The notes below the pieces were generated by a model that saw only the letters and a list, made by a program, of their open reading frames with translations, did no database searches and was not told the origin of the DNA. From Basidiobolus meristosporus CBS 931.73 (taxonomy: Eukaryota; Fungi; Basidiobolomycota), in NCBI GenBank assembly GCA_002104905.1, contig MCFE01000009.1, positions 124,001 to 188,000 of the forward strand: a DNA stretch of 64,000 bases. Reading direction: 5' to 3'. Shown one piece after another: positions 1-60,037 of this stretch; the first letter of the stretch is position 1; the number at the start of each line of letters is the position of its first letter. Position numbers and translations under genes: made by a program.

Positions 1-14
1 TGAATTTACATATT

Positions 15-6740: not shown

Positions 6741-7150
6741 TTTGGCGCAATCTGCGTTATTTATCTGATTTTTAACACATTTTGGTTAAATCTCCATCAA
6801 TTGCCATGTATCCCATCATTATGTCGCAAAAATCATCTGCAAACAATGCCTTGGTACTTTTATTGATGGTTTAATCATAGGTCTATAATCAAATAGGAAA
6901 TCTGCGATTGATGTGATCTGATCCATGTCAACGCAATCCAAGATGCATCATGCATAAAATATGGAAAATTCAACAATCACTTTAGTTTTCATATATATTT
7001 CATATAAGACCAGGTTGATGCCAATATACTGCTGTATAAGTATCCAAATCCGTTGCTATGGTCCCCATACCAAGCCTCAACTCATCTTTAGTACAACCCA
7101 GACAAAACCCATCCCCCAGCTCACAAGTGCGGTCCGGACCGGAAAAGTCG

Positions 7151-8320
7151 ATGTTGGATCCGTTTGAGTTCTTGCCAAATGATTTTAGTATGGCCCAAGT
7201 GTCTATGATGAGCCTTCATACAGATATTTTGGCACTACTGATTAATCTAGCAGAACTAGATACCTCAGAGAGTCAACAAAGATGGAAGAATTTGAGTAGA
7301 AAGCTGTGGCATGAGTTCTACATCAAGATGCCAGCCAATGTATGTAAAAAGATATATAACAAGACAAGTATTGAAATCAAGAATGAGCTGAGAGTGAGGG
7401 GATTTGACAAAGAAGCCGCGCAGGAACAATTTTGCGCGCAATTTGCACAGTACGGGCCGGACGCGTCCGTTTGTGCCTCAACTCTAGGAACCAAAGAGAT
7501 TTTGAATGAGTTTTTGCCTCAAATGACTAATGTACTACGTGATATATTAGTAGAGCTAAGTGGCTTCCAAGAGCAATATACACAGGACTCATCCAGGCAA
7601 CAGCTCCAAAGTATCAGACAGAGGGTAAGTGAATACCTTGAGGAATCAGATGGTGAGCTTCAGGAGGAAGAATACAGACCGCGAGCAACATTGTCCAGAT
7701 TGCGCCAGCACGCCTTGCTGGATTCCCTACCATCTCTTGCAACCACAGCGCGCCGGCACACGTCAGTCCAGAGTACGCCAACACCCTTTACCAGAACGCC
7801 CCGCGTCAAGTCAACGCGCATTGAGTCAACCCATGTTGGGTCAACACGTGCGCTTCAGAGCAAAACTACAAGAACTCGCCAAACTGCTCATTTAGACACA
7901 AGTCCATTGGAGCGGACCAAGTCGCGTCAACATGCGGCATCACATCGAACTCAGCCAAGGGCCATCTCAACGCGTCAAGGTGCGCCTGCGCGTGCCGTCT
8001 CACCTGACCATCAGCAAGCTACTTCTGGTGAACTGACTGATGATGACCAACATGAAGTGCCTCAACCACCAGAGCCCTTGGCAAGTAAAAGAACGTGTCA
8101 GCGCGTGGCACTACAGGCCGGTTCAGTTGGTTCAGTCGGAGCAATTCAGCACGGCCAAGCTGCAGCATTGCACTCATCAACTAGGAGGCAAAATACTGAC
8201 TACAAATACACAAGTAGCCAAGATGATAGTCAGCCAGGAAGTAGTATAGGTGTGCAAAGTGAGTCACTACTAAATGCTTCAGTAGTAATCCCTGTGAGAA
8301 AAAAACCCAGAAGAAGATGA
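7151..8320 (+). CDS. Transposon accessory protein, putative Myb/SANT-like DNA-binding N-terminus and long disordered tail
   Basis: Intact ORF of about 389 aa inside the TIRs. RWKNLSRKLWHEFYIKMPANVCKKIYNK resembles a Myb/SANT-like helix pattern. PIF/Harbinger elements typically carry such a second protein. Ends in a basic KKPRRR (NLS-like). Confidence 0.6.
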   Translation: MLDPFEFLPNDFSMAQVSMMSLHTDILALLINLAELDTSESQQRWKNLSRKLWHEFYIKMPANVCKKIYNKTSIEIKNELRVRGFDKEAAQEQFCAQFAQYGPDASVCASTLGTKEILNEFLPQMTNVLRDILVELSGFQEQYTQDSSRQQLQSIRQRVSEYLEESDGELQEEEYRPRATLSRLRQHALLDSLPSLATTARRHTSVQSTPTPFTRTPRVKSTRIESTHVGSTRALQSKTTRTRQTAHLDTSPLERTKSRQHAASHRTQPRAISTRQGAPARAVSPDHQQATSGELTDDDQHEVPQPPEPLASKRTCQRVALQAGSVGSVGAIQHGQAAALHSSTRRQNTDYKYTSSQDDSQPGSSIGVQSESLLNASVVIPVRKKPRRR

Positions 8321-9747
8321 TGCGATCGCTTTGAATCGCTCACATTTGTAATGATCCCAACAACCCTTTTTTTTTGCGATCCGAATCGAGCCATTGCAAA
8401 TCAGTGATCATCAAATTTTTGATATAAGTAATATCAAGGTTGTCTCACATTTGAGACAGAACCCCTATAAATAAACACCCTGCATATATATACGTCATCT
8501 GTACTACCAGTGCAGCTATTGGATCTGTTTTGCACCTACACGATTGCTTGCGTGCTAGCTATGACACCTTGTCCAATCACTAGGATCAGGGATTTACTTT
8601 CTCAATGGGCAAAATGGGATATTTAATGGCAAATCAGGTAGCTTTTTCAGTAGTCAATGAGCCAATTGGGGGCTGCCAGTTTCAGGATACTTTTGGACCA
8701 ATTAACCACTGAGATACCGTCCAATTGGAGTGAGGGTAACCAAAATGGTAAGTATCAGTGTAGTTTATAGTGTGATACACATTTATTTCCATTTACATTA
8801 AAGAAACATATCCAAATACCGGATTTTACCTGCCATTATAGCGGTATCCAATCGCGCATGTGATGCAAACATTACAAGTTGGCGCGATCATCCACGCCAA
8901 CCTCATCGTGTCAGATTGTGCCATAGTGTGCAAGATTGTCCCACATAGTGCAAAATCGTCCAAGAACAATCCTGCCTTCTGGTAGCTATAATATTGCGCC
9001 TGATTGTTCTTTGTGACCGCGGATTGCGCCGTGCGCCCTGGCACGGTACAATGGAACAAGTCTATTATACTGCAGTAATTTTACCAGTCTTTACAGTTAT
9101 ATTTGGGCAATATTTTGACACACTACTTGGAAAATATCCCTACTATGCAAATGCCACTCTGGCATGGAGTCTTGAGCATGTGCTGGCCTTCTGACAGGAT
9201 AACCTGAAATATTATTAAATTGCAGAATGACCATGAGTACAATCAGTGACTTTAGTTAGCACATGTGGTGTTTGTGGTATGCAAATCTTACAAAGCAATA
9301 CATCAAGACACAACTAATTAATGTCCATTTGACAAGACATTGCATTCTTTCCCTAAAGCCAAATTCTGATTTGGGTACATGGTTTGTAAAAATGTATCAG
9401 TCAGTACTTGATATCTATTGACTATAAATAGCATATCACAACCTTCAGTATAGTGTCAGCCAGAAGAAGGAAGAAAGTGAGCTCAGATATGAAGCAAGAA
9501 TTCAAAGAGTGATATTTATTGGTTATATTACACATATTGATTGCCAAGGTTATTTTTTGGTCTTTTGTATGGATGACATCTCACCAAGCTATTTAATCCA
9601 AGTAATTCACATATTTATTCTGGTTGCATGGCATTTTATCCTAATCTGAAAGGGTCAAGTAGACATTCACGTTTTCTGTACCTAGTCTGTCAGAAAGGTT
9701 CCTATCTTTGATGAAGTTAATATCACTTCCATGATGGCTTTAATGGA

Positions 9748-10038
9748 TCAGCAGTAGACATCGTTAGGGTTTCTCTTCAACCTGTCCAACAGTCTTCGTA
9801 GTCTTCTCCAGTCTTTGTCCACAATGTAGGCGGGAGCATCCGCTGGGCATTGCAGTTGTGTCTCGCATATAAAGATCACTTGTCCACGATTACAGAATGC
9901 AAGAATCCCATGCTGTCTGAAGATGATTCCTGGATAGTTTCTCGATGTAAACGGATGACGGCGTGAGGAATTCTCCTGCGCACCCACGACAAAGAGCATG
10001 GCGATACAAGCAAGTAGCAATGTCAAGATATACTTCAT
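9748..10038 (-). CDS. Small secreted Cys-containing protein, family member 1 (type A), 96 aa
   Basis: Signal-peptide-like MKYILTLLLACIAMLFVVGA, then HPFTSRNYPGIIF...FC...IC...CPADA...NPNDVYC. Intronless. The upstream in-frame extension in the ORF track is probably not translated. Confidence 0.85.
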   Translation of the reverse strand: MKYILTLLLACIAMLFVVGAQENSSRRHPFTSRNYPGIIFRQHGILAFCNRGQVIFICETQLQCPADAPAYIVDKDWRRLRRLLDRLKRNPNDVYC

Positions 10039-11481
10039 TTCAGAATAGAAATTGATGATTTTTGGGGCTCTTCTCAACGCGAGAGTATTTAAGGTTTTAT
10101 GGTTAATCAGCTCCAGCGAATTGAGTATCCCAGCCACCGAGGAAATGAAACATGGCGTTCGTCTAACTCATTCACAAAAGGACGCCATGGGTCTTCTATC
10201 AAATCAGAAATGGTAGGGTGTGGTGTTCAAAAACCTTTGCAAGTTTAGACAGGTGGCGCACAGTAGAAGCATTAGCAGTCCACCACTGGCCCAAAATAAT
10301 CGCTTATTTTCGTTGTAAAGAAGACAACCGGGATCTCCTCATCCTTCAATATTATATTTGATAATCAGACAGTCGATTTTTGTCGAATAAGCGACTTACC
10401 GTACTCTGATTGGACCCTTAAGAAAGAAGGCTTGCAAAATGCTAGGTCACCCATGCACCAGCACTGAGCATGAACGAATGTGTAGATTGTGGCATCTTCT
10501 TGACTGTAGACAAGAGGTTTAAAACAGGCCTGTAGACGAAGTCCTACCTATTTTGAACCTAAAATCCATTCCTAACTAGGTTACAATGGGAAGTTGCTGT
10601 GAGGTGGAATGAACCATGAGAGATATAAGCTTAAGTCGCGTTTCACTGAATCATCCATGTATGATTCGCGCTGGAAATTACCACCATCAATATACTTTAC
10701 AAATGTATCAGATTCTAGTTATCGAGCCTCTTCAGGGGCGACAATTTGTAACCATTTTGATAGAATATTTCCGGTCAAGTCATAGTATCCACAAATTTCG
10801 TTGTCTTACCTGGCTGCGCCGATATGAGCACATCGTCGATCACCGTTAGCAATGTCATCAATATGATTAGTTCAAGGCGTATTCGATTGCACTGAGCTTG
10901 GTAGGGTGAACTCCGTTCAAGTATGTGATTCTATGTTGCGCCATGTATATGTATGCTATTGGGGTTGATTTGGAATCATGATCTGTCAACAGCTGGTGTG
11001 GCCATGAGCGATGGCCACTAATTAGAGGTGCACACTTTGTTACTATAGAGCGCATCATTTTTTACATCAGGATCAAACCGTGACTTACCCGTAGCAGAGA
11101 ACTTTTGGCTTGTTGTGAAAGCACTGAAATAACCCGTCCTACCAAGCAGGAAATATTTGTATGTACTGACAGGATTTTTGGTTATTTAGAAGTTTGACTG
11201 ATAAACCGCGTAAGCGAATGCACGGTCACGGAAAACAGCCACGTATTTGGAGCGAAAAAACCATTGAGGCCTGATACTGAATCCATTGATGGTATGACCT
11301 TAATGAATCTCCATTGGATTCAATAGGTTAATGGCGGTGAACTCCTACTTTATTTCTGGTGTGTTAATCATCATCCTTCAAAGATATTTCTTACATATTG
11401 GTATAACATAATAGTATTGCTAAGCACTCCGGTTAACCCTTCGTTTCCGCCATTCTCGCCTAACTTCCTATATCGGTCCAC

Positions 11482-11793
11482 TCAGCGTCTACATTTCCCC
11501 AGCTGCGGATTCTTCTTTATTTCGGCAAGTAGCTCCTCTATCTTGCCCCTGTCATTCTCAAGGGTATAGCACCCTGCATCAGCTAGGCATTGGGCCGATG
11601 TCTCAACCAGGAAGATGATGTATCCGTTGTAACAGACGGCATTTTTCCCGGCCTCGTTGAAGATGATTCCCGGGTAGTTTTGTGGAGTAAACGGATTGCT
11701 GGAAGAGTCAGGGCACTTTGTAGAGTATGACTTAGCCTCTCCTACTGTAACTGTAGCAGCACAAGCAGCGATAAACGTCAGGATATACTTCAT
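11482..11793 (-). CDS. Small secreted protein, member 2 (type B), 103 aa
   Basis: Signal peptide, then STKC...NPFTPQNYPGIIF...VCYNG...CLADAGCY...NPQLGKC. Confidence 0.85.
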   Translation of the reverse strand: MKYILTFIAACAATVTVGEAKSYSTKCPDSSSNPFTPQNYPGIIFNEAGKNAVCYNGYIIFLVETSAQCLADAGCYTLENDRGKIEELLAEIKKNPQLGKCRR

Positions 11794-11822
11794 TTTCTAA
11801 AGTAATGGGACAGCGCTCTGCT

Positions 11823-11830
11823 CCTTTTAT
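11823..11830 (-). promoter_or_regulatory. ATAAAAGG TATA-like box shared by secreted-family promoters (example site)
   Basis: The same octamer lies 30-46 bp upstream of the ATG at 11823, 15006, 21222, 26231 and 60076. ATAAAAGA lies at 49059. Confidence 0.55.
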
Positions 11831-12254
11831 CGAACTTTTATGGTTTCCCCTTATTATAGAGATTATTTACTACGACATAGCATCAAGTGGCTTCTCATTG
11901 AAAGTTGTAATGCACACCTCCCTGATACGAACCCCCGACTATTCGAGCGGTGAATAAATTTCCCATGGCACTTTTCTCTCACCATTTATGCGGTATGTGC
12001 CCTTTTCCTGTCACTACGGGGATACCCCACTATGTACAATCTGTTTTGGCACTATATACAACAGGTTTATTTAAGCCAACTCCTTCGACCTTATGGCTAG
12101 ATTAATTAATAGATTCATATTATCCAGTCTATTCAATGTGCATGTCACATTTCCGTAGTTTCTCTTGCTTCAACAACCATATATAGATCAGCGGTGCCGC
12201 ATTATTATTATAAACCGGACACAACGGAAAAATATTTGAATCGTTCAATTACAA

Positions 12255-12560
12255 CTACTCTTTGTTTATTTGGCCATTGTTTATTGAGATGATCTTTGTA
12301 CAATTACCATATTTAGTCGAATTGCACCGAAACTTTATTTCTTGCGCCAATAAGGTTCTGCCTTTAAAGATCACCCTTGGGTTTTCTCTCTGCACCACAC
12401 CTGTTTGGAGTTTCACTTTAAACACATACCCACCAAGTCTTGCGTATTTGGATGAACTCTCACAATTGCAGAACACATTGAACCCATTCATCCAAAAGAT
12501 AATTACCGGGTAGTTCTCTAGAGTGAGCGGATTACCTTCTGGATGATTAGCTCCCACGCT
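12255..12560 (-). pseudogene. Degenerate type C small secreted protein with an internal deletion
   Basis: NPLTLENYPVIIFWMNGFNVFCN matches the core start. The sequence then jumps to DNA homologous to the 3' end and flank of member 3. Confidence 0.55.
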
Positions 12561-13387
12561 TTGACCAATGGACATCCCGGAAACCAACCTAGGGGCTAAA
12601 TCGACGCCACCTAAAGCGATATGCTCTTACCTATCCTTGTACATTGAATATCAGAATGTATGCGAGTTGGTTGACAAAATTGGGGATCTTACAATGTCAC
12701 GCTTGATTTTCCATGGAATCTGAAGTACACCATTACTACCCACGCTGTACCCCTAGCATACGCAAAACTTCTATTGCGGTCGTAAAGATGGAGCTGGCTT
12801 CTTCACGATAAAAAATCCCCGGTCTAAGAATCCTTCACATCCACTGAATGAACTATTTCGAAACACCTAGTCTATATATTCAGATGTATATTGACTATTA
12901 TATGGAAGATTCCATGCTTTCGAAAGCACTAACCTCTGACAACGTGAGCATTCCTTTGCTGGGGTGAAGGAATGGATTTGATGGTTGATCACTGATCTCC
13001 AATGCTGTATATACCAGATTCTTAGAACCCCAAGGAATTAAAACGGTGTTAGCCTTATAGATAATGAACTTTCACATTATAAGGAGAATTGGTAATTGAT
13101 GGTCCCCTAGGTGGAAACCCAAAATAAGGCAGGAACCTACACCGCATAACTCGGTACTATTAGGTAATAGCACATTATCAGTAATCACAACGTTGGTTTC
13201 CCCCTTCCAGATTATCATAATTAGCTGGCAAACATATCTTCGAGGACCAACTTCAATACACCGTTACATACTTCAGTGAGGTAAATACATGATCATTACT
13301 CAGTTTCCATCTTTGGTTGAACTTCGTCAGAACTTTATTTCAGGAGGCAATAATATTTCTCCTACATAGGTCACTCGCGCATTTCCT

Positions 13388-13687
13388 CTACTTTCTGCAC
13401 CACACCTGCTTGGGGTGTCGCTTCAACCTGGCCAACGCCCGTTCAAGATCCTTCCTGTTGAAGTCCAGAGTGTAGCTTGGGGCATCCGCGAGACACCTCA
13501 ATGAAGTCTCGCATATGTAGGTGAGCACACCTCGATCGCAGAATACGTTGAAGCCATCCTTCCTGAAAATAATCCCTGGGTAGTTCTTTGGGGTGAATGG
13601 ATTTCTGCGTGGAGAATCCGCTTTCGCCCCTTGGCCAAGGCACAGTACGGATATAAAGATAAGCACTAAAGCGGAGATGTTCCTCAT
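13388..13687 (-). CDS. Small secreted protein, member 3 (type C), 99 aa
   Basis: Signal peptide, then ADSPRRNPFTPKNYPGIIF...FC...IC...CLADA...HPKQVWCRK. Confidence 0.85.
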   Translation of the reverse strand: MRNISALVLIFISVLCLGQGAKADSPRRNPFTPKNYPGIIFRKDGFNVFCDRGVLTYICETSLRCLADAPSYTLDFNRKDLERALARLKRHPKQVWCRK

Positions 13688-14654
13688 ACTGGAAGGTGGA
13701 ATGTTTGTCGAATGCTCGAAAGGCTGACCTTCTTTCTATATTTATGTGATTCTCAATAGCCTCATGGTGATGTGTTGGCTGATCTATTTGCTGGTCAAGC
13801 ATACATCGCCAAGGCAAATGAGAAGGGATTCGAGAGCTGAACTGGAAGGGTATAGCCTACAATTTAACGCCATCGTGAAGCGCTTAGTAATACCCGCTGA
13901 AAGACCTAGTCGTTAGTCATGCGCAGTTTAAGTTTTGGTGGATCCAATCAAAGAGCCTTTTAAGTGTGCCATCATCAGTGGGTGTAACTCAAACCCGATA
14001 ATCATTTAAAACGGCGCACTAAGTCACATATTCTGACCAATATAGTACACCTACTCCTACAGACCAACAGTTTCAAACCATTTCGCTTGCCATGTACTCA
14101 TGTGGCGCCTGGGTTCCAATTAGGTAGCAAAGGTGTACGCCTCCTTGGAAATTCAAGACCCATCATATGATGGGAAATCGAGGATCAGTAGAAATAGTGT
14201 ATAGTTGTTGGCAATATCTCCACAAGTATTGCTACTCTTCGGGTCCAATGGAATAGATCCTACGAGTGGGAAATCGAAATTCTCGCTGCTTTGTCATTAT
14301 TTTGCTTTATCTACCTCGGTTAGCCAATAGGTACTCAACTGGGAGAACTTTCTGGCATCTGAACAAGCAGATGGGTTGTAAGGTCAGTCATGGACCCCTA
14401 CCACTGTACGTATCATACTCCGGTGCGCACTATTCTAGAAAGCAGAAATGCCATTGGTCTATTCAGCATCTGTAGGTACGATCTATAGCCGATTTTATGA
14501 AATGTTGGAAATCCATCGAATGTGTTCTGTGGCTTTATTTTTGACATTGTGAACAGCATTCGCAGGTATTGATTGCACATTGGTATTGTATAATAGTATT
14601 GCTACATGATCCTGTCAATCATTCATCTTCACCATTCTCATCTGCCTTGCTATA

Positions 14655-14975
14655 TCAGTCCACTGAGTGTCTACATTTTCCCAGCTGCGGATTCTTCTTT
14701 ATTTCGGCAAGTAGCTCCTCGATCTTGCTCCTGTCATTCTCAAGGGTATAGCACCCTGCATCAGCTAGGCATTGGGCCGATGTCTCAACCAGGAAGATGA
14801 TGTATCCGTTGTAACAGACGGCACTTTTCCCGGCCTCGTTGAAGATGATTCCCGGGTAGTTTTGCGGAGTAAACGGATTGCTGGAAAAGTCGGAGCACTT
14901 TGTAGAGTACGAATTGGCCTCTCCGATTCTAACGATAGCAGCGCAAGCAGAGGCGAATGTCAAGAGATATTTCAT
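14655..14975 (-). CDS. Small secreted protein, member 4 (type B), 106 aa
   Basis: Close paralog of member 2 with an intact ORF and signal peptide. Confidence 0.85.
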   Translation of the reverse strand: MKYLLTFASACAAIVRIGEANSYSTKCSDFSSNPFTPQNYPGIIFNEAGKSAVCYNGYIIFLVETSAQCLADAGCYTLENDRSKIEELLAEIKKNPQLGKCRHSVD

Positions 14976-16558
14976 TTTTTGATGCTGTCATGGCAACGAT
15001 CTATTCCTTTTATCATGTTCATCAAGCTGTCATAGAGGATAGAGGTAGATGTACACCAGATGTTGTGATACGGAACTCCCTAATTCTGATATCCGGTTAT
15101 TTGAGCGGAAAATTTTTTCTTCCGGCTGCTTTAATATACGGACCCATGAGGTGATATGCGGTTTTCATTTCCCACTATTCTGTTCACATCACTGGCTTTG
15201 AGCGATGTACTTGGGCTTAGCTTAGTAGAAGACTCAAATTTTACCCACACTTGTACCACCAGCTTAATAGGGGCCCGGCAGAAATGAAGACTAGTCGTTG
15301 CTCTAACCAGTTTAAAGTGATTGTTCCTATTTCATCAATGATGTATGCATCTAAATCTTTATCCTGGTGTAACATAATCGAGTTTAATGGTATAAAGCTA
15401 CATCTCCTCAGGCTGGTGAGTATATTTGGGCTACACAAAACTGAGCCCTGGTTCTTCATCCCCATTGAGATACCAATCAAGGCTATAGTATCCACTGTCT
15501 TGGGAATAGGATATGGTTTACCATAAAGAGGTCAGATTTACTCGTCAACTCTTTATCGATTATGGTTGCCTGTTTCAGTCAGAATCATCATGATTAGTAG
15601 GTTGGTATATCCTGTTCTCTATGTACTCTAGTACTATTAAATCTTGACCAAATTTCTAATTTAGGTTATTCAGAACACCGATGATTTCTAGATTAGCATT
15701 CTCAGTTGAAATTTGCCAGCTGGTAAGAGGTGAATTTAGAACCTAATGGAAACAGAATGCCAACCTTATGACAGAGTAATTTATAATCATTCTCACAGCT
15801 TGGTACGATTCAGGGCAAAATAAAGTTTGAGACACTGCACCAATGAATCAACTGAGATATTGCAGGCTATTTTAAGATTATTAATACATGTATAGGATCT
15901 CGAAAACCGTTGACTATACATGTATATACATTGGTGAGTTATTTCTGATCCAATAGATTTCTCGTCCATCCCACTACGCTCTTTGTCACTAACCATATTT
16001 GGTACGTAGGCGCACGCTCAGTTACCAGTAGCAGTGTCAATATTTATTGAAATCTTGGGATCTATGTGGGCTGTGTTTCTAAAGTGAAACCTCTGATCAC
16101 CAGTTCCAGGAATCTATCTGAGTGGCAAGGATTGGAGTACTAAACAATCGCTTTATTGCAGACATTACTTATCGATATTTGTTACATAAGCTTATTGTAT
16201 AGGTTCACTCAGTGTTCACATTTCCCCAACTAACCCTAACCCAACAGATATATTACCATATATCGTCGTTTCCACCTCCCTTCCCCCCCAAAAAAAAATA
16301 CCTACAACTGGACACCACTCCTGCTTTAACGTTGAAAGTCAGGCAAAATTTATTCACCTTCCAGCGTATTATTGATCAGGGAGCTTTTCATATTCCACTA
16401 CCCTGGAACTTCATAAATTTTCATCGGTTTCAGCCATCCGATGAATACCTTACAGGCAAAGCTCTTCCATAGATAAACAGATTTATTCTGGTTAAATAAT
16501 TTTAGAGCTCTCTTCAATATGGCTGAACAGAAATTTTCAATAACTTTGGACTAGTTCG

Positions 16559-16927
16559 TCAAGGCGATACCTCACTTTGCGAATCTGACGTTGCGTCGCC
16601 TGGTCTGGATGGAGGCCATATTACCTGATTCGAGGACCTGCAGTAAACATCGTTAGGGTTTCTCTTCAACCTGTCCAACAGTCTTCGTAGTCTTCTCCAG
16701 TCTTTGTCCACAATGTAGGCGGGAGCATCCGCTGGGCATTGCAGTTGTGTCTCGCATATAAAGATCACTTGTCCACGATTACAGAATGCAAGAATCCCAT
16801 GCTGTCTGAAGATGATTCCTGGATAGTTTCTCGGTGTAAACGGATGACGGCGTGAGGAATTCTCCTGCGCCCCCACGACAAAGAGCATGGCGATACAAGC
16901 AAGTAGCAATGTCAAGATATACTTCAT
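16559..16927 (-). CDS. Small secreted protein, member 5 (type A) with a 26-aa read-through C-terminal extension
   Basis: Nearly identical to member 1, but TGC-TGA is TGC-AGG here, so translation runs into the former 3' flank. Confidence 0.8.
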   Translation of the reverse strand: MKYILTLLLACIAMLFVVGAQENSSRRHPFTPRNYPGIIFRQHGILAFCNRGQVIFICETQLQCPADAPAYIVDKDWRRLRRLLDRLKRNPNDVYCRSSNQVIWPPSRPGDATSDSQSEVSP

Positions 16928-19597
16928 TTTAGAAGTTTAGGTGATGGTCAGTGAGAACGCTTCTGAAAGCGGCTCTTTTAAGGCTTTTGCGGTAAGCTAG
17001 CTCTGGAAAAAGCAGTGTTCGAGCCCTAAAGGTCATGAAACATGGCGCTGTGAGTTCGTGACTTGTTATTCAACCCATTCGCACAACGACGCCAGGAATT
17101 TTTCACCAAATCAGAAAGGATACTGGATGTGGTGCTCAGAAACTCTTGTGATTTTAGACTGCTGACACACGATAGAAACATCAGTAGTCCATTACTGGCT
17201 CAGCTCAGGCGCTCATTTTCCTTGTAAGGACAATTTCTAGAGTCTCTTCATCTAACGATAATATATTTAGTAGCCAGTGTTAACTTTCATGGAGTGAGTA
17301 AGCTGTAATACTCCAATTGGGTCCTTGACAATGAGGCTTGCGACATGCTAGGTCATCAACAAGCAAGCACCCTGATCACAAACGAGGATACTGAATTGGA
17401 CATGCACTGGACTAGGGAAGAGGGACTCCGAGCAGATCTGTAGACCGAAGCGTATCTTAAACTCTAATCGACCCAAATATGGTGCACCTCACAAAATTAC
17501 CAAGGGACTAGATGCCTAGGAGAAGCTGAATGCCCCATGGTAATTGTGCTCAAGAACCTAAAGAAATATAAGCTTAAATTGGGTTTTACCGCCTTGCGCC
17601 CACATCTGATTCATACTTGATGGTGCTACCACCGACACAGAATGTCTCAGTTTCAGATACTCGCTACCGAATCTCTTCAGGGGCGACAATTTGTAACCAT
17701 TTTGATAGAATATTTCCGGTCAAGTCATAACATTCACGTATTTCATTGTCTTACATGGCTGCGCCAATATGAGCACATCGTCGATCACCGTTAGCAATGT
17801 CATCAATGTGATTAGTTAGCAGCCATGCTCAAGGCGTATCCGATTGCACTGCACTTGGTAGGGTGAACTCCGTTCAAGTATGTGATTCTATGTTGCGCCA
17901 TATATATGTATGCTATTGGGGTTGATTTGGAATCATGATCTGTCAACAGCTAGCGTGGCGATGAAAGAATTCGATTCATTAGAGGTGCACATTTTGGCTC
18001 TAATGCTATGAAAACTGATTTACGATCATCTTCAGTTAATGGATGGTGTAGTACACATCAATACATTAAAGACGCGTTGCTCAGACACTATAGTACATAT
18101 CAACATTTCCACTAGCAGCAGGTCTCGACTCTCATATAGCATTATGATCCTCATATTTCATGAAAACACCTTGTCAAACAGTCTTACCAGATCAGTAAGA
18201 TACCACTTAGCTTGGATTGCGGTAATGAATCCTAGTAGTACTAAGCAGAACTATTAAATCTCATAGTATCATCTGTTGTATTAGAAAAACATTGGCTAAT
18301 TTATTTGAGACTTTTCAGGAATGGGTATCCTGCTGACGTACAGTAGATGTACTGTTCGTTTGCTGCCCAGTGGACGTAAGTGAGCCTGAAGAACTTCTGT
18401 TTTCAAGTGTCATCCATGGTCTCTCGTCGAATAGGTAGACTGCAGCGGAATAATTGGTTGTTTGCAGAAAGGAGGCTTATGATATCGCTCCACTTCGTCC
18501 AAGGATGACCATATCTCCTTTGGAAACGTTAAGAATAGTTCGAACCTTGCAACCCAAGTGCATGGTATGCTGAGTAGGCCACTAGGTATGTTGAGCTTGC
18601 TACTAGTGACTCATGCATTCTGGCTCCTAGTTTTGCCAACCAACTCTCATCCATTCAAATGCTCAATGGATTGATACCATATAGTACAGTGACTAAACCG
18701 CCTCAATCATATCAACCGGCACAGCCATTGGTCACTCCATTGATATACCTTCTGAAGCAACCTTCCCCCCTACCTTGAGTTTGACTTACTAACGGATAAT
18801 TTGTATTTTATAAGGGAATTCTCGGTCCAGAAATTATCAGTTAGCTGAGGTTGGAAACAGCGTTGCTAAGATGTTGAATAAACTATTTTGCACCACATAG
18901 GACATGTATCTAGGAGTATACTCACTGTGAGATGGGAGATTCTACGCTCAAAGAAGCATTATCCTCTTCCCCCCCCCAACAACAACAACAACCAATGGAG
19001 CCCGGGTTTTTGGTAAGCACTCCTAAGCGAGAATGAACGAATGAATTACCAATGCTGTATGTTTCATACATTGGTCTACTAGAATTCCGTAGAATGGAAA
19101 TAGCGTAAGCCCAACAGATATCTGACTTACATGACACCAGAAGCCTATTTCCCCGCTTACCAAGAAAGTTCTTGAGCAACCAGAGGGTGGTGTGTATACA
19201 GCCATTAATATAAATATAGCAGGATTGTTTTCCCAGTCTTCAATTACATTTGGTATAGTCAGATTGATATTTTCGGGCTAGGTAAAGCGGTACTACACAC
19301 CTTGCTTCATCATGAATAGTTCCTGACCAACCACGTGGTTGGTTGTGGATAGAAAAACAGCATTACACTGATTTCTCTGCCGCATAATTAATAATGTAAC
19401 ATCAGCTATAATAACAATGGCATCGACTGATTAGATGACGAGTGCGTCTGTGGCGAACACTTTTAGTCCACCATTACATATCTCAGTGAGGCAAATACAT
19501 GATCATTACTCAGTTTCCATCTTTGGTTGAACTTCGTCAGAACTTTATTTCAGGAGGCAATAGCCTTTCTCCTACAAAGATCACTCGCGCATCTCCT

Positions 19598-19897
19598 CTA
19601 CTTTCTGCACCACACCTGCTTGGGGTGTCGCTTCAACCTGGCCAACGCCCGCTCAAGATCCTTCCTGTTGAAGTCCAGAGTATAGCTTGGGGCATCCGCG
19701 AGACACCTCAATGAAGTCTCGCATATGTAGGTGAGCACACCTCGATCGCAGAATACGTTGAAGCCATCCTTCCTGAAGATAATCCCTGGGTAGTTCTTTG
19801 GGGTGAATGGATTTCTGCGTGGAGAATCCGCTTTCGCCCCTTGGCCAAGGCACAGTACAGATATAAAGATAAGCGCTAGAGCGAAGATGTTCCTCAT
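19598..19897 (-). CDS. Small secreted protein, member 6 (type C), 99 aa
   Basis: The mature part is identical to member 3; only two signal-peptide residues differ. Confidence 0.85.
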   Translation of the reverse strand: MRNIFALALIFISVLCLGQGAKADSPRRNPFTPKNYPGIIFRKDGFNVFCDRGVLTYICETSLRCLADAPSYTLDFNRKDLERALARLKRHPKQVWCRK

Positions 19898-20870
19898 ACT
19901 GGAAGGTAGAATGGTTTTCGAATACTCGAAAGGCTGACCTTCTTTCTATATTTATGTGGTTCTCAATAGCCTCATGGTGATGTGTTGGCTGATCTATTTG
20001 CTGCTCAAGCATACATCGCCAAGGCAAATGAGAAGGGATTCGAGAGCTGAACTGGAAGGGTATAGCCTACGATTTAACGTCAAAGTATAGTGGAGCACCT
20101 AGGAACACTCTCTATAAGACTTGGCCATTAATCACACATACTTCAAGCACTGGTATATCCAATAGAAAGGCCTCACATTGGTGTCATCGTAAGTGGGGCG
20201 TAATACAAAAATAACCTCCATACTAAGGATCACATAAGGTTTTCTATTGTGACCGATTGGAGACCTCTAATTCTACGACCCAACAGTTTCAAACCATTTC
20301 GCTTGCCATGTACTAATGTGGCGCCTGGGTTCCAATTAGATAGCAAGGGTGTACGCCTCCTTAGAAATTCAAGACCCATCATATGATGGGAAATCGAGGA
20401 TCAGTAGAAATAGTGTATAGTTGTTGGTAATATCTCCACAAGTATTGCTACTCTTCGGGTCCAATGGAATAGATCCTACGAGTGGGAAATCGAAATTCTT
20501 GCTGCTTTGTCACTATTTTGCTTTATCTGCCTCGGTTAGCCAATGGTTACTCAACTGGGAGAACTTGCTGGCATCTGAACAAGCAGATGGGTTGTAAGGT
20601 CAGTCATGGACCCCTACCACTGTACGTATCATACTCCGGTGCGCACTATTCTAGAAAGCAGAAATGCCAGTGGTCTATTCAGCATCTGTAGATACGGTCT
20701 ATAGCCGATTTTATGAAATGTTAGAAATCCATCGAATGTGTTCTGTGGCATTATTTCTGACATTGTGAACAGCACTCGCAGGTATTGATTGCGCATTGGT
20801 ATTGTATAATAGTATTGCTACACGACCCTGTCAACCATTCATCTCCACCATTCTCATCTGCCTTGCTATA

Positions 20871-21191
20871 TCAGTCCACTGAGTGTCTACATTTTCCCAG
20901 CTGCGGATTCTTCTTTATTTCGGCAAGTAGCTCCTCGATCTTGCCCCTGTCATTCTCAAGGGTATAGCACCCTGCATCAGCTAGGCATTGAGCTGATGCC
21001 TCAACCAGGAAGATAATGTATCCGTTGTAACAGACGGCACTTTTCCCGGCCTTGTTGAAGATGATTCCCGGGTAGTTTTGCGGAGTAAACAGACTGCTAG
21101 AAGAGTCAGGGCACTTGGTAGATTACAGCTTGACTTCTCCAACTGTAGTAAGGATAGTACAAGCAGCGATGAATGTCAAGGAAAATTTCAT
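20871..21191 (-). pseudogene. Type B small secreted protein with a premature TAA at codon 23
   Basis: Manual translation MKFSLTFIAACTILTTVGEVKL*STKCPDSSSSLFTPQNYPGIIF...GKCRHSVD*. Same 321-nt length as member 4. The stop lies at 21123-21125. Confidence 0.85.
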
Positions 21192-23305
21192 TTTCTGATG
21201 CTAACATGATGTCGATTTGTTCCTTTTATTGGGTCTTCCTGGTGGTCCCAGAGATACATGCACACTAAATGCTTCAACACAGAACCCCCTGATTCGAATT
21301 CCCAGTGGTAGATGATTTTCTTCAGTTGTACTAATATGCGGATACTTCTATAAGAGGGGTGGGTTTGGAGTGTGACGTTTGTTTACCCGATATTCTGTTC
21401 TCACCAATAGCTTCTAAGTAAATTTACTGGCAGCTGTACTACCGACGCAATAGGAGCTTGGCAGAAATGAACATTATTCAGTATACCAACCGGTTTAGTA
21501 TCATTACACTTCCTTTACCATATGCCCCTAGACTCTATGGAGGGTTCAATGATCAGGCCCATGCCCCCGTCATTCAATAGAGCTAGAAGACCTCGTCACT
21601 TGACGTTGTGTGTGGTTAGACCATATGAATCATCAGCAGTATGCTTAGTAGGGGTAAAATATTCGCTGTCTTGGGAACATGGATATGATTCAGCTTCTAT
21701 TTGATGCGATCAGATATACTCATTCACCATTCATGATGAGAATTTCCAACCTGGAATCTTTGCTGGGATAAAATCATGTGCTGCCAATTTTGTTAGAAAG
21801 ACAGTGTTTTGACATCATAACTGGTGAATGAAATTTTGCATGGGGACCTAAATGAAGGGACATAATTGAATACAGTTCCTAACCTTGTAGATTTTATTCA
21901 GGTTGGATTTTTGCTGATATTAATACGGTACTCTGATGTAGTATAGTGACTACCTTATATTGATAGTACAACTTTTGTTACACAGGTACCAATCCAAGAA
22001 GTGAGCGGAACTTGGAATCTGGTTGAAATTAGATTCTGGTGACAGAAGGCAATTGGTAATTAGCTATTACATCTCCAGTCTGGTACACATTCAGAATGGA
22101 ATAAGTTTTGAGGCTGGATAGCACTGGGCCTGCTAGGGCAATACAGACCACAAATGATATTTAGAGCTTTCTGTAGGCATGTGTTGCTGGGTATCTAATT
22201 TTCTAACAGCAATTTTTCATGAAAATTGGTAGGGCATATATCTTTTGACATGGGTGATCATACTTGGGACATGGATATTTTTAGGTACATGAATGTGTCG
22301 ACTATCCGTATTTCAAGTTGCTCCAAGCGCACTCTTCCCAGTATAAGTGAACTGTTGAAACCTACCTATTTCAGAATACCCACTTTAACTCTATTCATAC
22401 CTGGTATAAAGATGCACACAGTTACCACAATAGTGTTGAGACCATGATCCTTGGATAGTTTGGCTGATTGAACGAATGGCTGCAAGGTTCAGTGATGAAT
22501 GTCAGGAGAGGCTTCCTTTTCGGACGTCGACTATCCAAAGCAGAATTTGTGAAACATCTCCCTCAATGTATAAGTGTTCCGTGCTGATTTTACAGCGGCA
22601 TTAATATGAGGGCACTTCCAACTATTACCGGGTTCTTTTCTAGACATATCAATAGACCTTTATTCATGCGCTATTTGATTCGGGCCCTCTTCTATAAGCA
22701 CGCTGATCGCCAAGAACTTTCCAGTTGAATGTTCGTGTAGGGCTTGAAGTGTAATGGGCAATAGACTGGCACATCAAGCTATATGATATATCACTTTCAT
22801 TGGCTTTACCTTTACCTTTCTTCCAGCGTGATCGATACTTGGCCACATGGTTTGCAACCGATTCTTATCCAATGACTACAATGAATAAGAAACCATACCC
22901 CCCACTCGCCTCCTCCAAGATAGCCATAACAGGATTGATTTGACATTCAAACATTAATAATCAGTCAGGATATTGTCCTTACGGCGCATTAAAGCTCAAT
23001 GACGTCCTTGTATACTATATTTTTATCATTCATTGGAAAGGCCTGCTACACTGGAACGTTGGGAACTTCAATCGACTTTGTATGTCCCGTTTCCGCCGGA
23101 AACAACCTCAGAGTAACCCAATGAAAGATATTTTCAAGCAATAGATGTATTTATTCTGGTTACATTATTTACTATCTCATCACAGAATAGCCGAATAGAG
23201 ATAGCATACATACTTTGACTGGTTTGACAGGATGAGAATCTGACACAAACGCAATCTCACCTACCTAGATGGAGGCTAGGTTACCTCCTTGGTGGACTCG
23301 ACTCC

Positions 23306-23596
23306 TTAACAGTAGGCATCGTTAGGGTTTCTCTTCAACCAGCCCAACAGTCTTTGAAGTGATCTCCGGTCTGTACCCACGATGTAGGTGAGAGCATCAG
23401 CTGGGCATCGCAACGACGTCTCACATATAAAGATGACCTGTCCACGATAACAGAAGGCAATAATCCCATTCTGTTTGAAGATAATTCTTGGGTAGTTTCT
23501 CGGTGTGAACGGATGGCGACGTGAGGAATTTTCCTGCGCCCCTACGACAAAAAGCATGGTGGTACATCCAAGAAGCAGTGTTGGGATATACTTCAT
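23306..23596 (-). CDS. Small secreted protein, member 8 (type A), 96 aa
   Basis: Paralog of members 1 and 5 with an intact ORF and signal peptide. Confidence 0.8.
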   Translation of the reverse strand: MKYIPTLLLGCTTMLFVVGAQENSSRRHPFTPRNYPRIIFKQNGIIAFCYRGQVIFICETSLRCPADALTYIVGTDRRSLQRLLGWLKRNPNDAYC

Positions 23597-24465
23597 TTCA
23601 GGATTTTAACTGATAGTCGGTGGGAACTGGGGCATAGTGCTCTAAGCATTTGGGTCGTGAAACATGGCGTTGTGAGTCCGTGAGTTGTCATCCAACCTAT
23701 TTGGTCAGCAAAGCAATCTGTTCCCGAATTAGAAACGGTACTATACATGGTGTTCAGAAACTTTTGCGAGTTTAAACCGCTGACGTACCGCAGAAACATC
23801 CCCTGTTCATCACTAGCTCAGTGTGGGCGCACATTCTCCTTGAAAAGATAGTCTCCAGGGCCTTTTCATCTAGTGGGATTTTATTTAATGGCCCGCATGT
23901 GGATTTCCATTGGATGATTAAAATACGGTATTCTATTTGGGTCCTTGACAAAGGAGGCTTAGGACACGTTGGGTCATCGAATGACAAATACTCAGCAAAT
24001 ATGTTGTATTGTACATATGTATGGTTAAGGGGGGTTAGAGCAGTCCTGAAGGTCATAATGTAAAGTAGCCGAAAGACTACATTCGCTACGGCAATTGAGT
24101 TCTTGGTCTTAAAGAGATATAAGCTCAAGTGAGGTTTCACCGCAGCACTGTCTCACAGGGTAGGACCAGTATGATCATCATTGGCACGTAGCCATGCTCA
24201 ATGTGTATTCGATTACACTGAGCTTAGTAGTGTGAACTCCGCTCAAAGATGTGATTTTATATTGCAATATGGATATAATCATGCTATGTGGATTGATTTG
24301 CAATCTCGATTGATTAGAAACGCGGTTTCAGTTAGATGTGGGCGGATAGATTGGGAAAGACAACAATAGATTTGCAAATTTTGAGTGGATATCGGAAAAT
24401 TTTACTGACTTTGATGCAACTATATCCCAACGTTGCAAACAACGCGGGGATATAGCGCTATCTCC

Positions 24466-24756
24466 TCAGCAGTACACATCATCAGGGTTTCTCTTCAACC
24501 TGTTCAAAAGCCTTTCGAGTCTTTCATGGTCATTCTCTAAGGGGTAGCCTGGAGCATCGGCTGGACATTGCAACGCAGTCTCACATATGAAGGTGACTTG
24601 TCCGCGATAACAAAAGGCGAGAATTCCGTGCTGCCTGAAGATAATTCTTGGATAGTTTTCAGGAGTGAATGGATTCCGGGGTGGTGAATCGGCTTGTGCA
24701 CCACTTAAACTAAGTACAGCGATACAAGCAAGTATAAATGGGATGATGTATCTTAT
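24466..24756 (-). pseudogene. Small secreted protein, member 9: intact 96-codon frame but start codon is ATA (absent from the ORF track)
   Basis: Manual translation IRYIIPFILACIAVLSLSGAQADSPPRNPFTPENYPRIIFRQHGILAFCYRGQVTFICETALQCPADAPGYPLENDHERLERLLNRLKRNPDDVYC*. Confidence 0.75.
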
Positions 24757-25901
24757 GTTTAGAAATTGGGGTGAATGTCTATGGAAGGCTTCTGAGCGAG
24801 TCTATTTTGGAGTTTACGGTATATCAGCTTAGGTGGATGACCGGGTGGTCATGAAACATGGCGTTGTAGTATCGAGTAGAACCATCTATCGTGTTAAAAA
24901 AAGCATTGGCTCCTGCGTACGAAATTGGGTGAGAATAACTACCTTGCAAACATTTAGTAAGTGTACCGCCAATATGCTTCCCAATGGGCGCAAGTGAGTC
25001 GGAAGTACTTCTGTTTTGAAGGGCCACCCGTGAGCTTTCATCGAATAGGCAGATTGGAACAGGGTAATTGGGTGTTGGAGATAGCAAGCTTGTGACATAA
25101 CGGATGCCAAGTCACCAATATTTAAGCACTTAAAGGAACGGGGATTTTACCCAAAGCTTTGCCCGATTAAGGAAGAATTTAGAAACAATGTATACAATAT
25201 ATAATCTGAATATATCTGTCAACCAAGTCTCATAGACATCTGGTGAAGGACATACGGTATAGTATGCACGATATGGCAGCTTAATATAGGATCATGTATA
25301 TATGAATGATGAGAGATGCTTCCAGCGCGTGCTGATTGAGTGTGAAAGGGCCATGTCTTGACTTTTTCCAAGAATGACAATCTCTCTCATGGGAACGCTC
25401 GGCACGGCTTGGATCCTACGACCAAAGAGATATACACCCTGAATAGGTTACTGCCTATTATGTTGAACCTACAACTAGTGGCCCTAACATTTTGGGCCGA
25501 TCTTGCTCACTGCGGAATCTCGAAATATTATCAACCAACTTCTAAAATCATTCTTTCCAAAGCTCAACGTATGGATACCGCGTATAGTAGAAAAACACTG
25601 TACCAATAACATCAACCGCGGTGATCATTGGTTGTTCCTTCCATTGCATACCGAGTGGAATACTGGTTTCCCCTACCTCCACGTGTATATGTTATATATT
25701 TATCTTTTAAAGGAGAGCAAATGGCTGCCTGGCTTTTCACTCAATAAACATGAACGATGGTTAGTCACTTCATGGGTGCAAGGATCAAGCGTTTATTCAA
25801 AGGGAGACTAGGTTTGGCCAGTACGGCACATCACGTATAATGGTCTTCAATATTGTTGGTATGTCGTGGATTTGACGGAGAGCCAGACCACCTAGATAAA
25901 T

Positions 25902-26192
25902 TCAGCAGTAGACGTCATTGGGATTTTCCTTCAGCCTGGCAAGGAAGCTCTCGAGTGTTCTTCGATTTTCCTCCACGTTGTACCCTGGGGCGTCAGCAGG
26001 GCAATCGAGCTCAGTTGCACAGATGTACATGACTTCTCCACGGTAGCAAAACGCTGGAATTCCATGCTGATTGAATATGATACCAGGATAATTCTCAGGA
26101 GTGAATGGATTTCTCGGCGGGGAAGCGGCCTGGACACTTCCTAGTGTGAAAACAGAGGCAAGGGCAAACACGAATGTGAGGAAGGAGCTCAT
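25902..26192 (-). CDS. Small secreted protein, member 10 (type A-like), 96 aa
   Basis: Signal peptide, then NPFTPENYPGIIF...FC...IC...CPADA...NPNDVYC. Confidence 0.85.
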   Translation of the reverse strand: MSSFLTFVFALASVFTLGSVQAASPPRNPFTPENYPGIIFNQHGIPAFCYRGEVMYICATELDCPADAPGYNVEENRRTLESFLARLKENPNDVYC

Positions 26193-49104: not shown

Positions 49105-49512
49105 ATGAACTACTTCCTGATCCTTGCGCTTGCCTGTACCGCTGTGCTTCACCTCGACGGTGTCCAGTCCCACTCATCAAAGCACACCTCAAAGCACCAT
49201 TCCAAGCACTGGTCTAAGCATCACACCAAGCACTGGCCCAAGCACCACTCCAAGCACAAGCATCACTCCAAGCATCACTCCAAGCACAAGCCCCACTACA
49301 ACCCATTCACCCCAAAGAACTACCCTGGCATCATCTTCAAGCAGGGAAGCAAGAATGCCTTTTGCTACAATGGCAAGACCAACTTCATTGTCAAGAGATC
49401 GTCCGACTGCCCAGCCGATGCTGGATGCTACAATGTGTACAATGACAAGAGAACGCTCAAGGACCTGTTGGCCAAGCTACAGAAAGACCCCAGCCTAGCC
49501 AAATGCACATAG
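49105..49512 (+). CDS. Small secreted protein, type D with His/Lys-rich N-terminal repeats, 135 aa
   Basis: Signal peptide, (S/T/P)KH(H/T/W) repeats, then YNPFTPKNYPGIIF...FCYNG...CPADAGCY...DPSLAKC. Confidence 0.85.
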   Translation: MNYFLILALACTAVLHLDGVQSHSSKHTSKHHSKHWSKHHTKHWPKHHSKHKHHSKHHSKHKPHYNPFTPKNYPGIIFKQGSKNAFCYNGKTNFIVKRSSDCPADAGCYNVYNDKRTLKDLLAKLQKDPSLAKCT

Positions 49513-51543: not shown

Positions 51544-51924
51544 TTGAAAGATAGCAATAATGTAAATGCAAATATACCATGTCAAATAGTAAAATAAATA
51601 TCGTAGTTTTATTTGTTTTAAAGAGTACCTCTTGCCGTTATGAAGAAGTACAAAGAATGAGGATGAGAAGACGAAGAAAGTGAAGTATATAACACATATC
51701 TTTCAGGATAATCGATCATGCAGACATACGTGTATACTACTTCCGGTATTAGGAATATGCAGTTTAATGGATTCGAATGATTTTCAACTTAGAGTCAAAC
51801 TGGTGATCTTGGATACCTACAGACTACCCATGTCAAGAAATATTGTTTCTATTACCCAGCGCCTCGTTCAACAAGAAACACGGAAGTTAGATCGGCCTCC
51901 TAACTCTTCTCTTAGTCCAATAAA

Positions 51925-52109
51925 CATCATCTTTAAGCAGGGAAGCAAGAATGCCTTTTGCTACAATGGCAAGACCAACTTCATTGTCAAAGAGATCATC
52001 CGACTGCCCAACTGATGCTGGATGCTACAATGTGCACAATGACAAGAGAACGCTCAAGGACATGTTGGCCAAGCTACAGAAAGACCCCAGCCTAGCCAAA
52101 TGCACATAG
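51925..52109 (+). pseudogene. 5'-truncated, frameshifted type D secreted-protein relic
   Basis: Matches the 3' half of 49105-49512 from IIFKQGSK to AKCT*, with an extra A (GTCAAAGAGA). The signal peptide and His repeats are absent. Confidence 0.8.
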
Positions 52110-54628: not shown

Positions 54629-55036
54629 ATGAACTACTTCCTGATCCTTGCGCTTGCCTGTACCGCTGTGCTTCACCTCGACGGTGTCCAGTCCCACTCA
54701 TCAAAGCACACCTCAAAGCACCATTCCAAGCACTGGTCTAAGCATCACACCAAGCACTGGCCCAAGCACCACTCCAAGCACAAGCATCACTCCAAGCATC
54801 ACTCCAAGCACAAGCCCCACTACAACCCATTCACCCCAAAGAACTACCCTGGCATCATCTTCAAGCAGGGAAGCAAGAATGCCTTTTGCTACAATGGCAA
54901 GACCAACTTCATTGTCAAGAGATCGTCCGACTGCCCAGCCGATGCTGGATGCTACAATGTGTACAATGACAAGAGAACGCTCAAGGACCTGTTGGCCAAG
55001 CTACAGAAAGACCCCAGCCTAGCCAAATGCACATAG
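54629..55036 (+). CDS. Type D His-rich small secreted protein, same protein as 49105-49512
   Basis: Identical translation, and about 270 bp of upstream DNA is also near-identical. Confidence 0.85.
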   Translation: MNYFLILALACTAVLHLDGVQSHSSKHTSKHHSKHWSKHHTKHWPKHHSKHKHHSKHHSKHKPHYNPFTPKNYPGIIFKQGSKNAFCYNGKTNFIVKRSSDCPADAGCYNVYNDKRTLKDLLAKLQKDPSLAKCT

Positions 55037-56398: not shown

Positions 56399-56806
56399 CT
56401 ATGTGCATTTGGCTAGGCTGGGGTCTTTCTGTAGCTTGGCCAACAGGTCCTTGAGCGTTCTCTTGTCATTGTACACATTGTAGCATCCAGCATCGGCTGG
56501 GCAGTCGGACGATCTCTTGACAATGAAGTTGGTCTTGCCATTGTAGCAAAAGGCATTCTTGCTTCCCTGCTTGAAGATGATGCCAGGGTAGTTCTTTGGG
56601 GTGAATGGATTGTAGTGGGGCTTGTGCTTGGAGTGATGCTTGGAGTGATGCTTGTGCTTGGAGTGGTGCTTGGGCCAGTGCTTGGTGTGATGCTTAGACC
56701 AGTGCTTGGAATGGTGCTTTGAGGTGTGCTTTGATGAGTGGGACTGGACACCGTCGAGGTGAAGCACAGCGGTACAGGCAAGCGCAAGGATCAGGAAGTA
56801 GTTCAT
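56399..56806 (-). CDS. Type D His-rich small secreted protein (inverted), same protein as 49105-49512
   Basis: Identical translation, with one visible synonymous difference (AAC/AAT in YNPF). Confidence 0.85.
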   Translation of the reverse strand: MNYFLILALACTAVLHLDGVQSHSSKHTSKHHSKHWSKHHTKHWPKHHSKHKHHSKHHSKHKPHYNPFTPKNYPGIIFKQGSKNAFCYNGKTNFIVKRSSDCPADAGCYNVYNDKRTLKDLLAKLQKDPSLAKCT

Positions 56807-59386: not shown

Positions 59387-60037
59387 TTAGCATTTGGCTA
59401 GGCTGGGGTTCCTCTGTAACTTAGCTAGCAGATGCTTGAGATCTTTCCTGTCCCTGCTCACGACGTAACATCCAACATCTGCTACACATTCGGATGATCT
59501 CTCGACAATGAAGTTGATCATGCGATTGTAGCAAAAAGCATATTTTCCATCTCGTTCGAAGATGATGCCAGGGTAGTTCTTGGGGGTGAACGGGTCGTAG
59601 TACCTTTCATGCTTGGGCCAGTGCTTTGTGTGGTGTTTTGGCCAGTGCTTTGTGTGGTGTTTGGGCCAGTGCTTACTGTTATTGTTATTGTTGTTCCAGT
59701 TCTTGTTGTTGTTATTGTTGTTGTTCCAGTTCTTGTTGCTGTTGTTGTTCCAGCTCTTGTTGTTGTTATTGTTGCTCCAGTTCTTGTTGTTGTTATTGTT
59801 GCTCCAGTTCTTGTTGTTGTTATTGTTGTTCCAGTTCTTGTTGTTGTTATTGTTGTTCCAGTTCTTGTTGTTGTTGTTGTTGTTGTTGTTGTTCCAGTTC
59901 TTGTTCTCATACTTGTAGTGATATTCCGAATAGTGATTTGAGTTTTGCCTTGATGTTTGCTTTGATGAATGAGATTGTACACCATCTAGGTGGATTACAG
60001 CAGTACAGGCAAGTACAAGAGCCAGGAGATAGTTCAT
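59387..60037 (-). CDS. Small secreted protein with Asn-rich (KNWNNNNN)n and KHWPKHHT repeats, 216 aa
   Basis: Signal peptide like type D, the repeat block, then YDPFTPKNYPGIIF...FCYN...CVADVGCY...NPSLAKC. Confidence 0.85.
   Translation of the reverse strand: MNYLLALVLACTAVIHLDGVQSHSSKQTSRQNSNHYSEYHYKYENKNWNNNNNNNNNKNWNNNNNNKNWNNNNNNKNWSNNNNNKNWSNNNNNKSWNNNSNKNWNNNNNNNKNWNNNNNNSKHWPKHHTKHWPKHHTKHWPKHERYYDPFTPKNYPGIIFERDGKYAFCYNRMINFIVERSSECVADVGCYVVSRDRKDLKHLLAKLQRNPSLAKC
59605..59905. repeat. Coding mini/microsatellite: (TTG)n-based units encoding (K[N/S]W[N/S]NNNNN)-type repeats plus 24-bp units encoding KHWPKHHT
   Basis: Directly visible tandem units such as GTTCCAGTTCTTGTTGTTGTTATTGTT and TTGGGCCAGTGCTTTGTGTGGTGT. 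Confidence 0.9.

Follow-up and report, generated by a model that had tools for sequence, protein, structure and literature searches.

A genus-restricted, tandemly expanded family of small, putatively exported cysteine-containing proteins in Basidiobolus

The window analysed here, 64,000 nucleotides of the fungus Basidiobolus meristosporus CBS 931.73 (contig MCFE01000009.1, positions 124,001 to 188,000 of the forward strand), carries a tandem array of small genes for an unassigned family of cysteine-containing proteins. The best overall explanation, to which we give a probability of about 0.55, is that they form a family of exported alpha/beta mini-proteins with two disulfides, found only in Basidiobolus, with extracellular interaction as the favoured role. 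Basidiobolus lives as a symbiont in the guts of amphibians and reptiles and occasionally causes disease in people.

Comparison of the eight intact proximal members with the window by tblastn placed 11 loci between 9685 and 26195, all of them on the minus strand, and another five at 49.1-60.0 kb; a further match at 59.9 kb covers just the signal peptide of the last copy and was not counted as a locus. The eight intact proximal copies are uninterrupted open reading frames (ORFs) from ATG to stop, encoding 96-122 amino acids (aa). This agrees exactly with the original prediction, which described 11 co-oriented intronless members, eight of them intact and 96-122 aa long, with five others at 49-60 kb. 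Every copy can be read without an intron, and four of the 16 are defective, three of these belonging to the proximal set of 11. The distal copies have a low-complexity linker between the signal peptide and the core, either His/Lys-rich (42 aa) or Asn-rich (about 125 aa). Half of the array was found again on contig MCFE01000452.1 (L002), where positions 1-12730 are collinear with 21791-9064 of the window (98.3% identity over 12.7 kb, same genes). Since it has been assembled twice, the array is not an assembly artefact. L002 represents either a haplotype left uncollapsed in the public assembly or a segmental duplicate of very recent date; we refer to it below as the second haplotype. The copies are as follows, in window coordinates.

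9748..10038, minus strand: A1, type A, basic, 96 aa, intact (ATG checked)
11482..11793, minus strand: B1, type B, acidic, 103 aa, intact, of the Cys43 type with an additional N-terminal Cys; listed at NCBI as a hypothetical protein
12453..12599, minus strand: degenerate fragment with only the N-terminal half of a copy, located by tblastn and degenerate on the second haplotype too
13388..13687, minus strand: C1, type C, basic, 99 aa, intact, with RR ahead of the core
14655..14975, minus strand: B2, type B, acidic, 106 aa, intact
16559..16927, minus strand: A2 (P0001), type A, basic, 122 aa, intact, with a 26-aa tail beyond the terminal Cys
19598..19897, minus strand: C2, type C, 99 aa, intact
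20874..21200, minus strand: type B pseudogene, an in-frame stop separating signal peptide from core; same stop on both haplotypes
23306..23596, minus strand: A3, 96 aa, open frame
24469..24780, minus strand: copy with an open core frame and no start codon, probable pseudogene
25902..26192, minus strand: D, acidic, 96 aa, intact; the protein used for the AlphaFold2 model
49105..49512, plus strand: H1, basic, signal peptide, 42-aa His/Lys-rich linker and core
51896..52103, plus strand: degenerate H-type copy with a frameshifted C-terminal half
54629..55036, plus strand: H2, core identical to that of H1
56399..56806, minus strand: H3, inverted duplicate of H1/H2
59387..60037, minus strand: N, 216 aa, signal peptide, Asn-rich/His-rich low-complexity linker of about 125 aa and core

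The family has expanded by tandem and segmental duplication, with a few copies decayed. C2 lies inside a 1.77-kb segment carrying a C and a B copy that duplicates 13259-15013 at 90% identity, while the remaining copies are older. Pro5 of the core, invariant elsewhere, is replaced by Ser in A1, and the A1 allele on the second haplotype retains the proline. A3 has a Gly-to-Arg replacement in the NYPGIIF motif and a proline within the signal peptide, and it has neither the TATA-like box nor the AATAAA signal described below. Because both signals are missing and these substitutions are damaging, A3 may be decaying.

The 69-aa core is free of insertions and deletions in 13 copies, as judged by a regular-expression scan, and the motifs quoted in the original prediction all occur. 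Eighteen core positions are invariant (P2, F3, T4, P5, N7, Y8, P9, I11, I12, F13, C22, C37, A39, D40, Y44, L57, P64 and C69). There are four core cysteines, three of them invariant, and an invariant Tyr/Phe. The fourth cysteine is found at position 31 in types A, C and D and at position 43 in type B, which has a fifth cysteine as well. By far the most conserved part is the N-terminal arm, with a column entropy of 0.64 versus 1.4-1.7 elsewhere; its motif NPFTPxNYPG contains one freely variable position (x is E, R, Q, K or A, with Glu the commonest). Along the helix, positions 46, 53, 57 and 60 form an invariant stripe of hydrophobic residues, and the exposed positions flip in charge. Core charges are +4 to +7 (isoelectric point, pI, 9.0-9.6) for the basic types A, C, H and N but -2 to -5 (pI 4.5-4.9) for the acidic types B and D. 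The RR dipeptide and the Arg-rich helix noted earlier for types A and C are indeed present there, but they are not features of the family, types B and D being acidic. RR ahead of the core is absent from B, D, H, N and all the long forms described below; a family-wide class of Kex2-processed precursors, which calls for a conserved dibasic site, was rejected. The acidic types B and D likewise rule out a uniform reading as cationic antimicrobial peptides. With regard to export, the N-termini resemble signal peptides: they are basic at position 2-3, contain a hydrophobic stretch (Kyte-Doolittle 2.0-3.3 in a span of 10 residues) and show small residues ahead of the probable cleavage site. The lengths of 96-216 aa lie within the size range of small secreted proteins (<300 aa).

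The substitution patterns and flanking signals point to functional genes. The ratio of nonsynonymous to synonymous substitution rates (dN/dS) was 0.06-0.35 in pairwise comparisons of paralogues, and 0.18 between alleles of the six genes common to both haplotypes (1875 nt). Between types, synonymous change has reached saturation (dS >1.4 and often not computable), so the genes are old. A TATA-like box (TAAAAG/TAAATA) lies 36-57 nt upstream of the ATG in 11 of the 12 intact copies versus 2.6% of the background, and AATAAA occurs no more than 150 nt beyond the stop in 9 of 10 copies versus a background of 10%. No k-mer of 8-10 nt was common to the upstream regions of four or more types; the short TATA-like box alone recurs. 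By these signs the genes are complete modules resembling transcription units, old and under purifying selection. The diversification claimed earlier is borne out by the distinct types, but the dN/dS values indicate purifying selection and no positive selection is evident.

The AlphaFold2 model of copy D, built with an alignment of 15 sequences, reached a predicted local distance difference test score (pLDDT) of 90.7 and a predicted template modelling score (pTM) of 0.78. After an ordered N-terminal arm come four strands (residues 17-20, 23-28, 31-36 and 48-50) and a helix (51-67); the model numbering equals the core position plus 5 (core position 1 is model residue 6). The core is thus confidently predicted to consist of the conserved N-terminal arm, a meander of three strands with a short fourth one, and an amphipathic helix at the C-terminus. 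In the model, core position 31 (residue 36) closes strand 3 and core position 43 (residue 48) opens strand 4. If strands 3 and 4 close a hairpin, the two positions would be cross-strand neighbours, which would account for a disulfide partner hopping between them. A predicted complex of mature A2 (basic) and B2 (acidic), encoded by adjacent genes, scored 0.01, which speaks neither for nor against binding.

Fold searches with the copy D model gave no neighbour. The best Foldseek match in the PDB had an E-value of 4.8 and a template modelling (TM) score of 0.34; a shape search of the ESM Atlas yielded TM scores of at most 0.51 over 57 residues, to unrelated families only, and feature and structure look-ups in the same resource gave no usable lead. 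For a domain of 74 residues, a blank fold search of a predicted structure is no proof of a new fold. No defensin, KP4, KP6, hydrophobin, double-psi beta-barrel (DPBB) or inhibitor fold was found in these searches, and the defensin, KP4, killer-toxin and hydrophobin candidates of the original prediction were consequently abandoned. Cysteine counts speak against two of them as well: a hydrophobin needs eight cysteines in the pattern C-CC-C-C-CC-C, and a cysteine-stabilised alpha-beta defensin needs six to eight with CxxxC/CxC staples, whereas the family core has four, none of them in the helix. The KP4 (PF09044) and KP6 killer toxins were rejected as neither profile matches nor fold neighbours.

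Sequence comparison with known families was equally negative. None of the 16 members matched any Pfam family, even at E≤10, as had been anticipated. At the same threshold PF14856 (HCE2) matched neither the members in the window nor proteins P0004-P0009 and P0018-P0025, and PF09044 (KP4) and PF03330 (DPBB_1) gave no match either. The core profile found nothing credible among all PDB sequences, and no KP4-type chain; matches of a TATA-binding-protein sequence over the N-terminal arm were weak and short (E 0.0074-0.7) and were taken as chance. A strong match to a characterised family was thus sought by profile searches and none appeared.

Relatives were found within the genus only. An exhaustive HMMER search of 1.84 billion representative proteins with the core profile gave seven convincing relatives, all from B. 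meristosporus or B. ranarum, and the lower matches, long proteins aligned in multiple stretches, were taken as spurious. With a wider profile, word-indexed searching returned 14 matches, all hypothetical proteins of Basidiobolus; an initial word-indexed search with a single member had found no match and is superseded by the profile searches. Motif-seeded scans found no relative in 185,579 prokaryotic species genomes or in Joint Genome Institute (JGI) metagenome contigs. These blank scans give no sign of a bacterial origin, and horizontal transfer from bacteria was rejected for want of a prokaryotic relative. As far as these searches reach, the family is restricted to Basidiobolus, and the earlier description of an unassigned, tandemly expanded family with signal-peptide-like N-termini, several types and pseudogenes holds, with no relative outside the genus.

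The relatives represent a long form, in which the core is followed by a conserved extension of about 35 aa ending in the last cysteine. This form occurs in both B. meristosporus and B. ranarum, and it too is arranged in arrays: four copies adjoining housekeeping genes (L001), four copies on a 6-kb contig of B. ranarum (L004), and another array of six neighbouring locus tags in one run. In a maximum-likelihood tree all short forms fall into one group (support 95/90), within which the Cys31 types A, C and D make up a single clade (98/95). The short form is, on this tree, one derived clade of a longer, ancestral-looking form; it has lost the C-terminal extension of about 35 aa, with the last cysteine relocated to just behind the helix, and in the subclade of A, C and D a cysteine has relocated from core position 43 to 31. 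Given these groupings, the extension loss and the move from 43 to 31 were each single events. Short forms were seen in B. meristosporus only; as the B. ranarum assembly is fragmented, their absence from that species is not established.

Taken as exported mini-proteins, the family members would enter the endoplasmic reticulum, form two disulfides and be released as products of about 75 residues. The disulfides would pair either as C22-C69 with C37-C31/43 or as C22-C37 with C69-C31/43. Kex2-like cleavage behind the RR of types A and C would uncover the conserved arm. Together with the CxADA loop, the arm would make up a common functional or structural face, while the exposed helix surface (basic in types A, C, H and N, acidic in B and D) and the optional linkers could tune the place or target to which each paralogue binds. 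As to the role, we would guess at interaction with competitors or hosts in the gut or soil niche, for competition or defence, although we rate this at somewhat less than an even chance; the proteins would then work like the small antimicrobial proteins or effectors that other fungi stabilise by disulfides.

Several observations weigh against this explanation. Selection is purifying and not diversifying, which is less typical of arms-race effectors. The net charge spans -5 to +7 across paralogues, so that one cationic membrane-active mechanism is impossible for the family as a whole. Expression and secretion are predictions from the gene sequences, and the public annotation contains only three of the eight intact proximal genes, as hypothetical proteins of Basidiobolus meristosporus CBS 931.73. 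The disulfide pairing is not readable from the model, and because the fold search was blank the structure supports no functional analogy.

A bolder variant, which seems improbable to us, would have the family adopt an unseen fold, arisen de novo or diverged beyond recognition, and serve as a secreted battery for competition or defence against gut microbes, with the arm as the active site and the helix faces and linkers as targeting modules. It is also rather unlikely that the proteins serve the fungus itself as structural, surface or adhesive components of its cell wall or spores, for instance of a hyphal coat or of the sticky capilliconidia. Purifying selection and an old, stable set of paralogues would suit such a function, as would the Asn-rich and His/Lys-rich spacers of the distal copies, since spacers of this kind are common in wall and adhesive proteins, and the odd fifth cysteine of type B could serve for cross-linking. 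However, the proteins have no C-terminus resembling a glycosylphosphatidylinositol (GPI) anchor signal, no Ser/Thr-rich stalk and no match to a wall-protein family, and the proximal copies are without repeat structure.

The arm invites a further comparison, with small protease inhibitors of the canonical type that would protect the fungus during gut passage, the segment T-P-x-N-Y-P being substrate-like and x the specificity residue. In favour of this, the most conserved segment holds one freely variable position. Small size, disulfide stabilisation and a sheet-plus-helix build are common among inhibitor families, and the arm motif may resemble Kazal or potato-inhibitor loops. The organism does pass through vertebrate guts (PMC9391592). 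Yet no inhibitor family was matched by sequence or by fold, and a specificity for Glu, which is the most frequent x, would be unusual; we regard inhibitors as a slim prospect.

Slightly slimmer still is the case for a highly diverged member of the Ecp2/HCE2 effectors, acting like antifungal proteins of the KP4 type. Ecp2/HCE2 proteins have a KP4 fold (an alpha/beta sandwich), their defining features being a trio of conserved cysteines and an aromatic motif (PMC12382754), to which the three invariant cysteines and the Tyr/Phe of our family bear a superficial likeness. The long form is of a size with the KP4/Ecp2 domain, and UniProt names P0006 an 'Ecp2 effector protein domain-containing protein'. 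On the other hand, the PF14856 and PF09044 profiles, the PDB sequences and the fold searches for a KP4-type structure were blank, as described above, and P0005, a paralogue of P0006 with 52% identity (both from L001), is instead named for an 'RlpA-like DPBB domain'. As these automatic names conflict and neither was reproduced by hmmscan, we consider them unreliable. For the long form, AlphaFold2 gave a poor model (pLDDT 56), which was left out of the fold search; because it is too poor to exclude a distant relation to KP4, we keep this rival at low probability.

Even less probable is that the genes are unexpressed relics, with ORFs kept by chance or by recent duplication. Most copies are missing from the public annotation, the defective copies make up a quarter of the set (4/16) and A3 may be on its way to joining them, but dN/dS lies far below 1 over saturated dS and also between alleles, the core has stayed indel-free, promoter-like and poly(A)-like signals are conserved, and the family is conserved across two species. 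A double-psi beta-barrel of the RlpA type, for which only the UniProt name of P0005 speaks, can practically be dismissed, given that DPBB_1 did not match, that the model has four strands and a helix and not a six-stranded barrel, and that the fold searches returned no barwin, expansin, RlpA or cerato-platanin chain.

The surroundings of the array contain further elements. A broken PIF/Harbinger-type transposase (DDE_Tnp_4) lies at 5815-6740 on the minus strand, split over two ORFs, with an E-value of 1.8e-8 for the C-terminal piece. This transposase was the one part of an alleged transposon-rich zone that could be confirmed. It is situated inside a 3.4-kb segment (5637-9063) adjoining the array; since that segment is missing from L002, it represents an insertion polymorphism beside the array. 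A direct repeat of about 1.07 kb with 79% identity (4035-5091 and 8002-9065) lies on either side of the transposase region. On the distal side, a second tandem array extends over 41715-63523 on both strands, with at least 10 CsbD-like genes (PF05532, E 1e-35) that have no signal peptides and whose central part, rich in His, Thr and Gly, is variable. Interleaved with the H-type copies, these genes have been duplicated together with them as one unit, in direct and inverted orientation (48831-49557 corresponds to 54355-55081 and 56968-56207, and 50416-51601 to 58742-57557). We found no paper connecting CsbD with Basidiobolus. Between the two sets of copies lie a fragment of a GMA12/MNN10-type glycosyltransferase (PF05637; 28412-29041, minus strand), a 175-aa ORF with a signal-peptide-like start, many cysteines, a hydrophobic C-terminal tail like that of GPI-anchored proteins and no Pfam match (30159-30686, minus strand), and a B-box and DUF2009 gene split by an intron (31153-33380, plus strand).

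On present evidence we are dealing with one more orphan family of small secreted proteins, of which fungal genomes hold thousands. It is nevertheless a family of a type in which new activities, antimicrobial or directed at the host, might be found, and its confident, neighbour-less model makes it amenable to expression, structural work and assays of activity. It also offers a clear case of a disulfide cysteine relocating between two positions during the evolution of a family. Should the improbable reading as a defence battery with a novel fold prove true, Basidiobolus would be a rich source of new antimicrobial protein scaffolds.

Among known systems, the Ecp2/HCE2 and KP4/KP6 proteins are comparable in being small, secreted, disulfide-stabilised fungal alpha/beta proteins that are often encoded by multigene families and in some cases inhibit other fungi (PMC12382754). 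The family described here differs from them in having no match to their hidden Markov models, an architecture of arm, four strands and C-terminal helix, and four cysteines. A closer parallel in general character is provided by the small secreted proteins (SSPs) of zygomycetes: a secretome survey that included Basidiobolus listed 47,494 SSPs, and more than two-thirds of the shared orthogroups were without a Pfam match (PMC9391592). With these our proteins share a length below 300 aa, a signal-peptide-like N-terminus, few cysteines, the absence of a Pfam domain, a narrow taxon range and tandem expansion. The family has not been described individually before and is a new member of this familiar category of lineage-specific small secreted proteins, from which it stands apart by a confident fold model, a traceable history from long to short form with relocation of a cysteine, and purifying selection.

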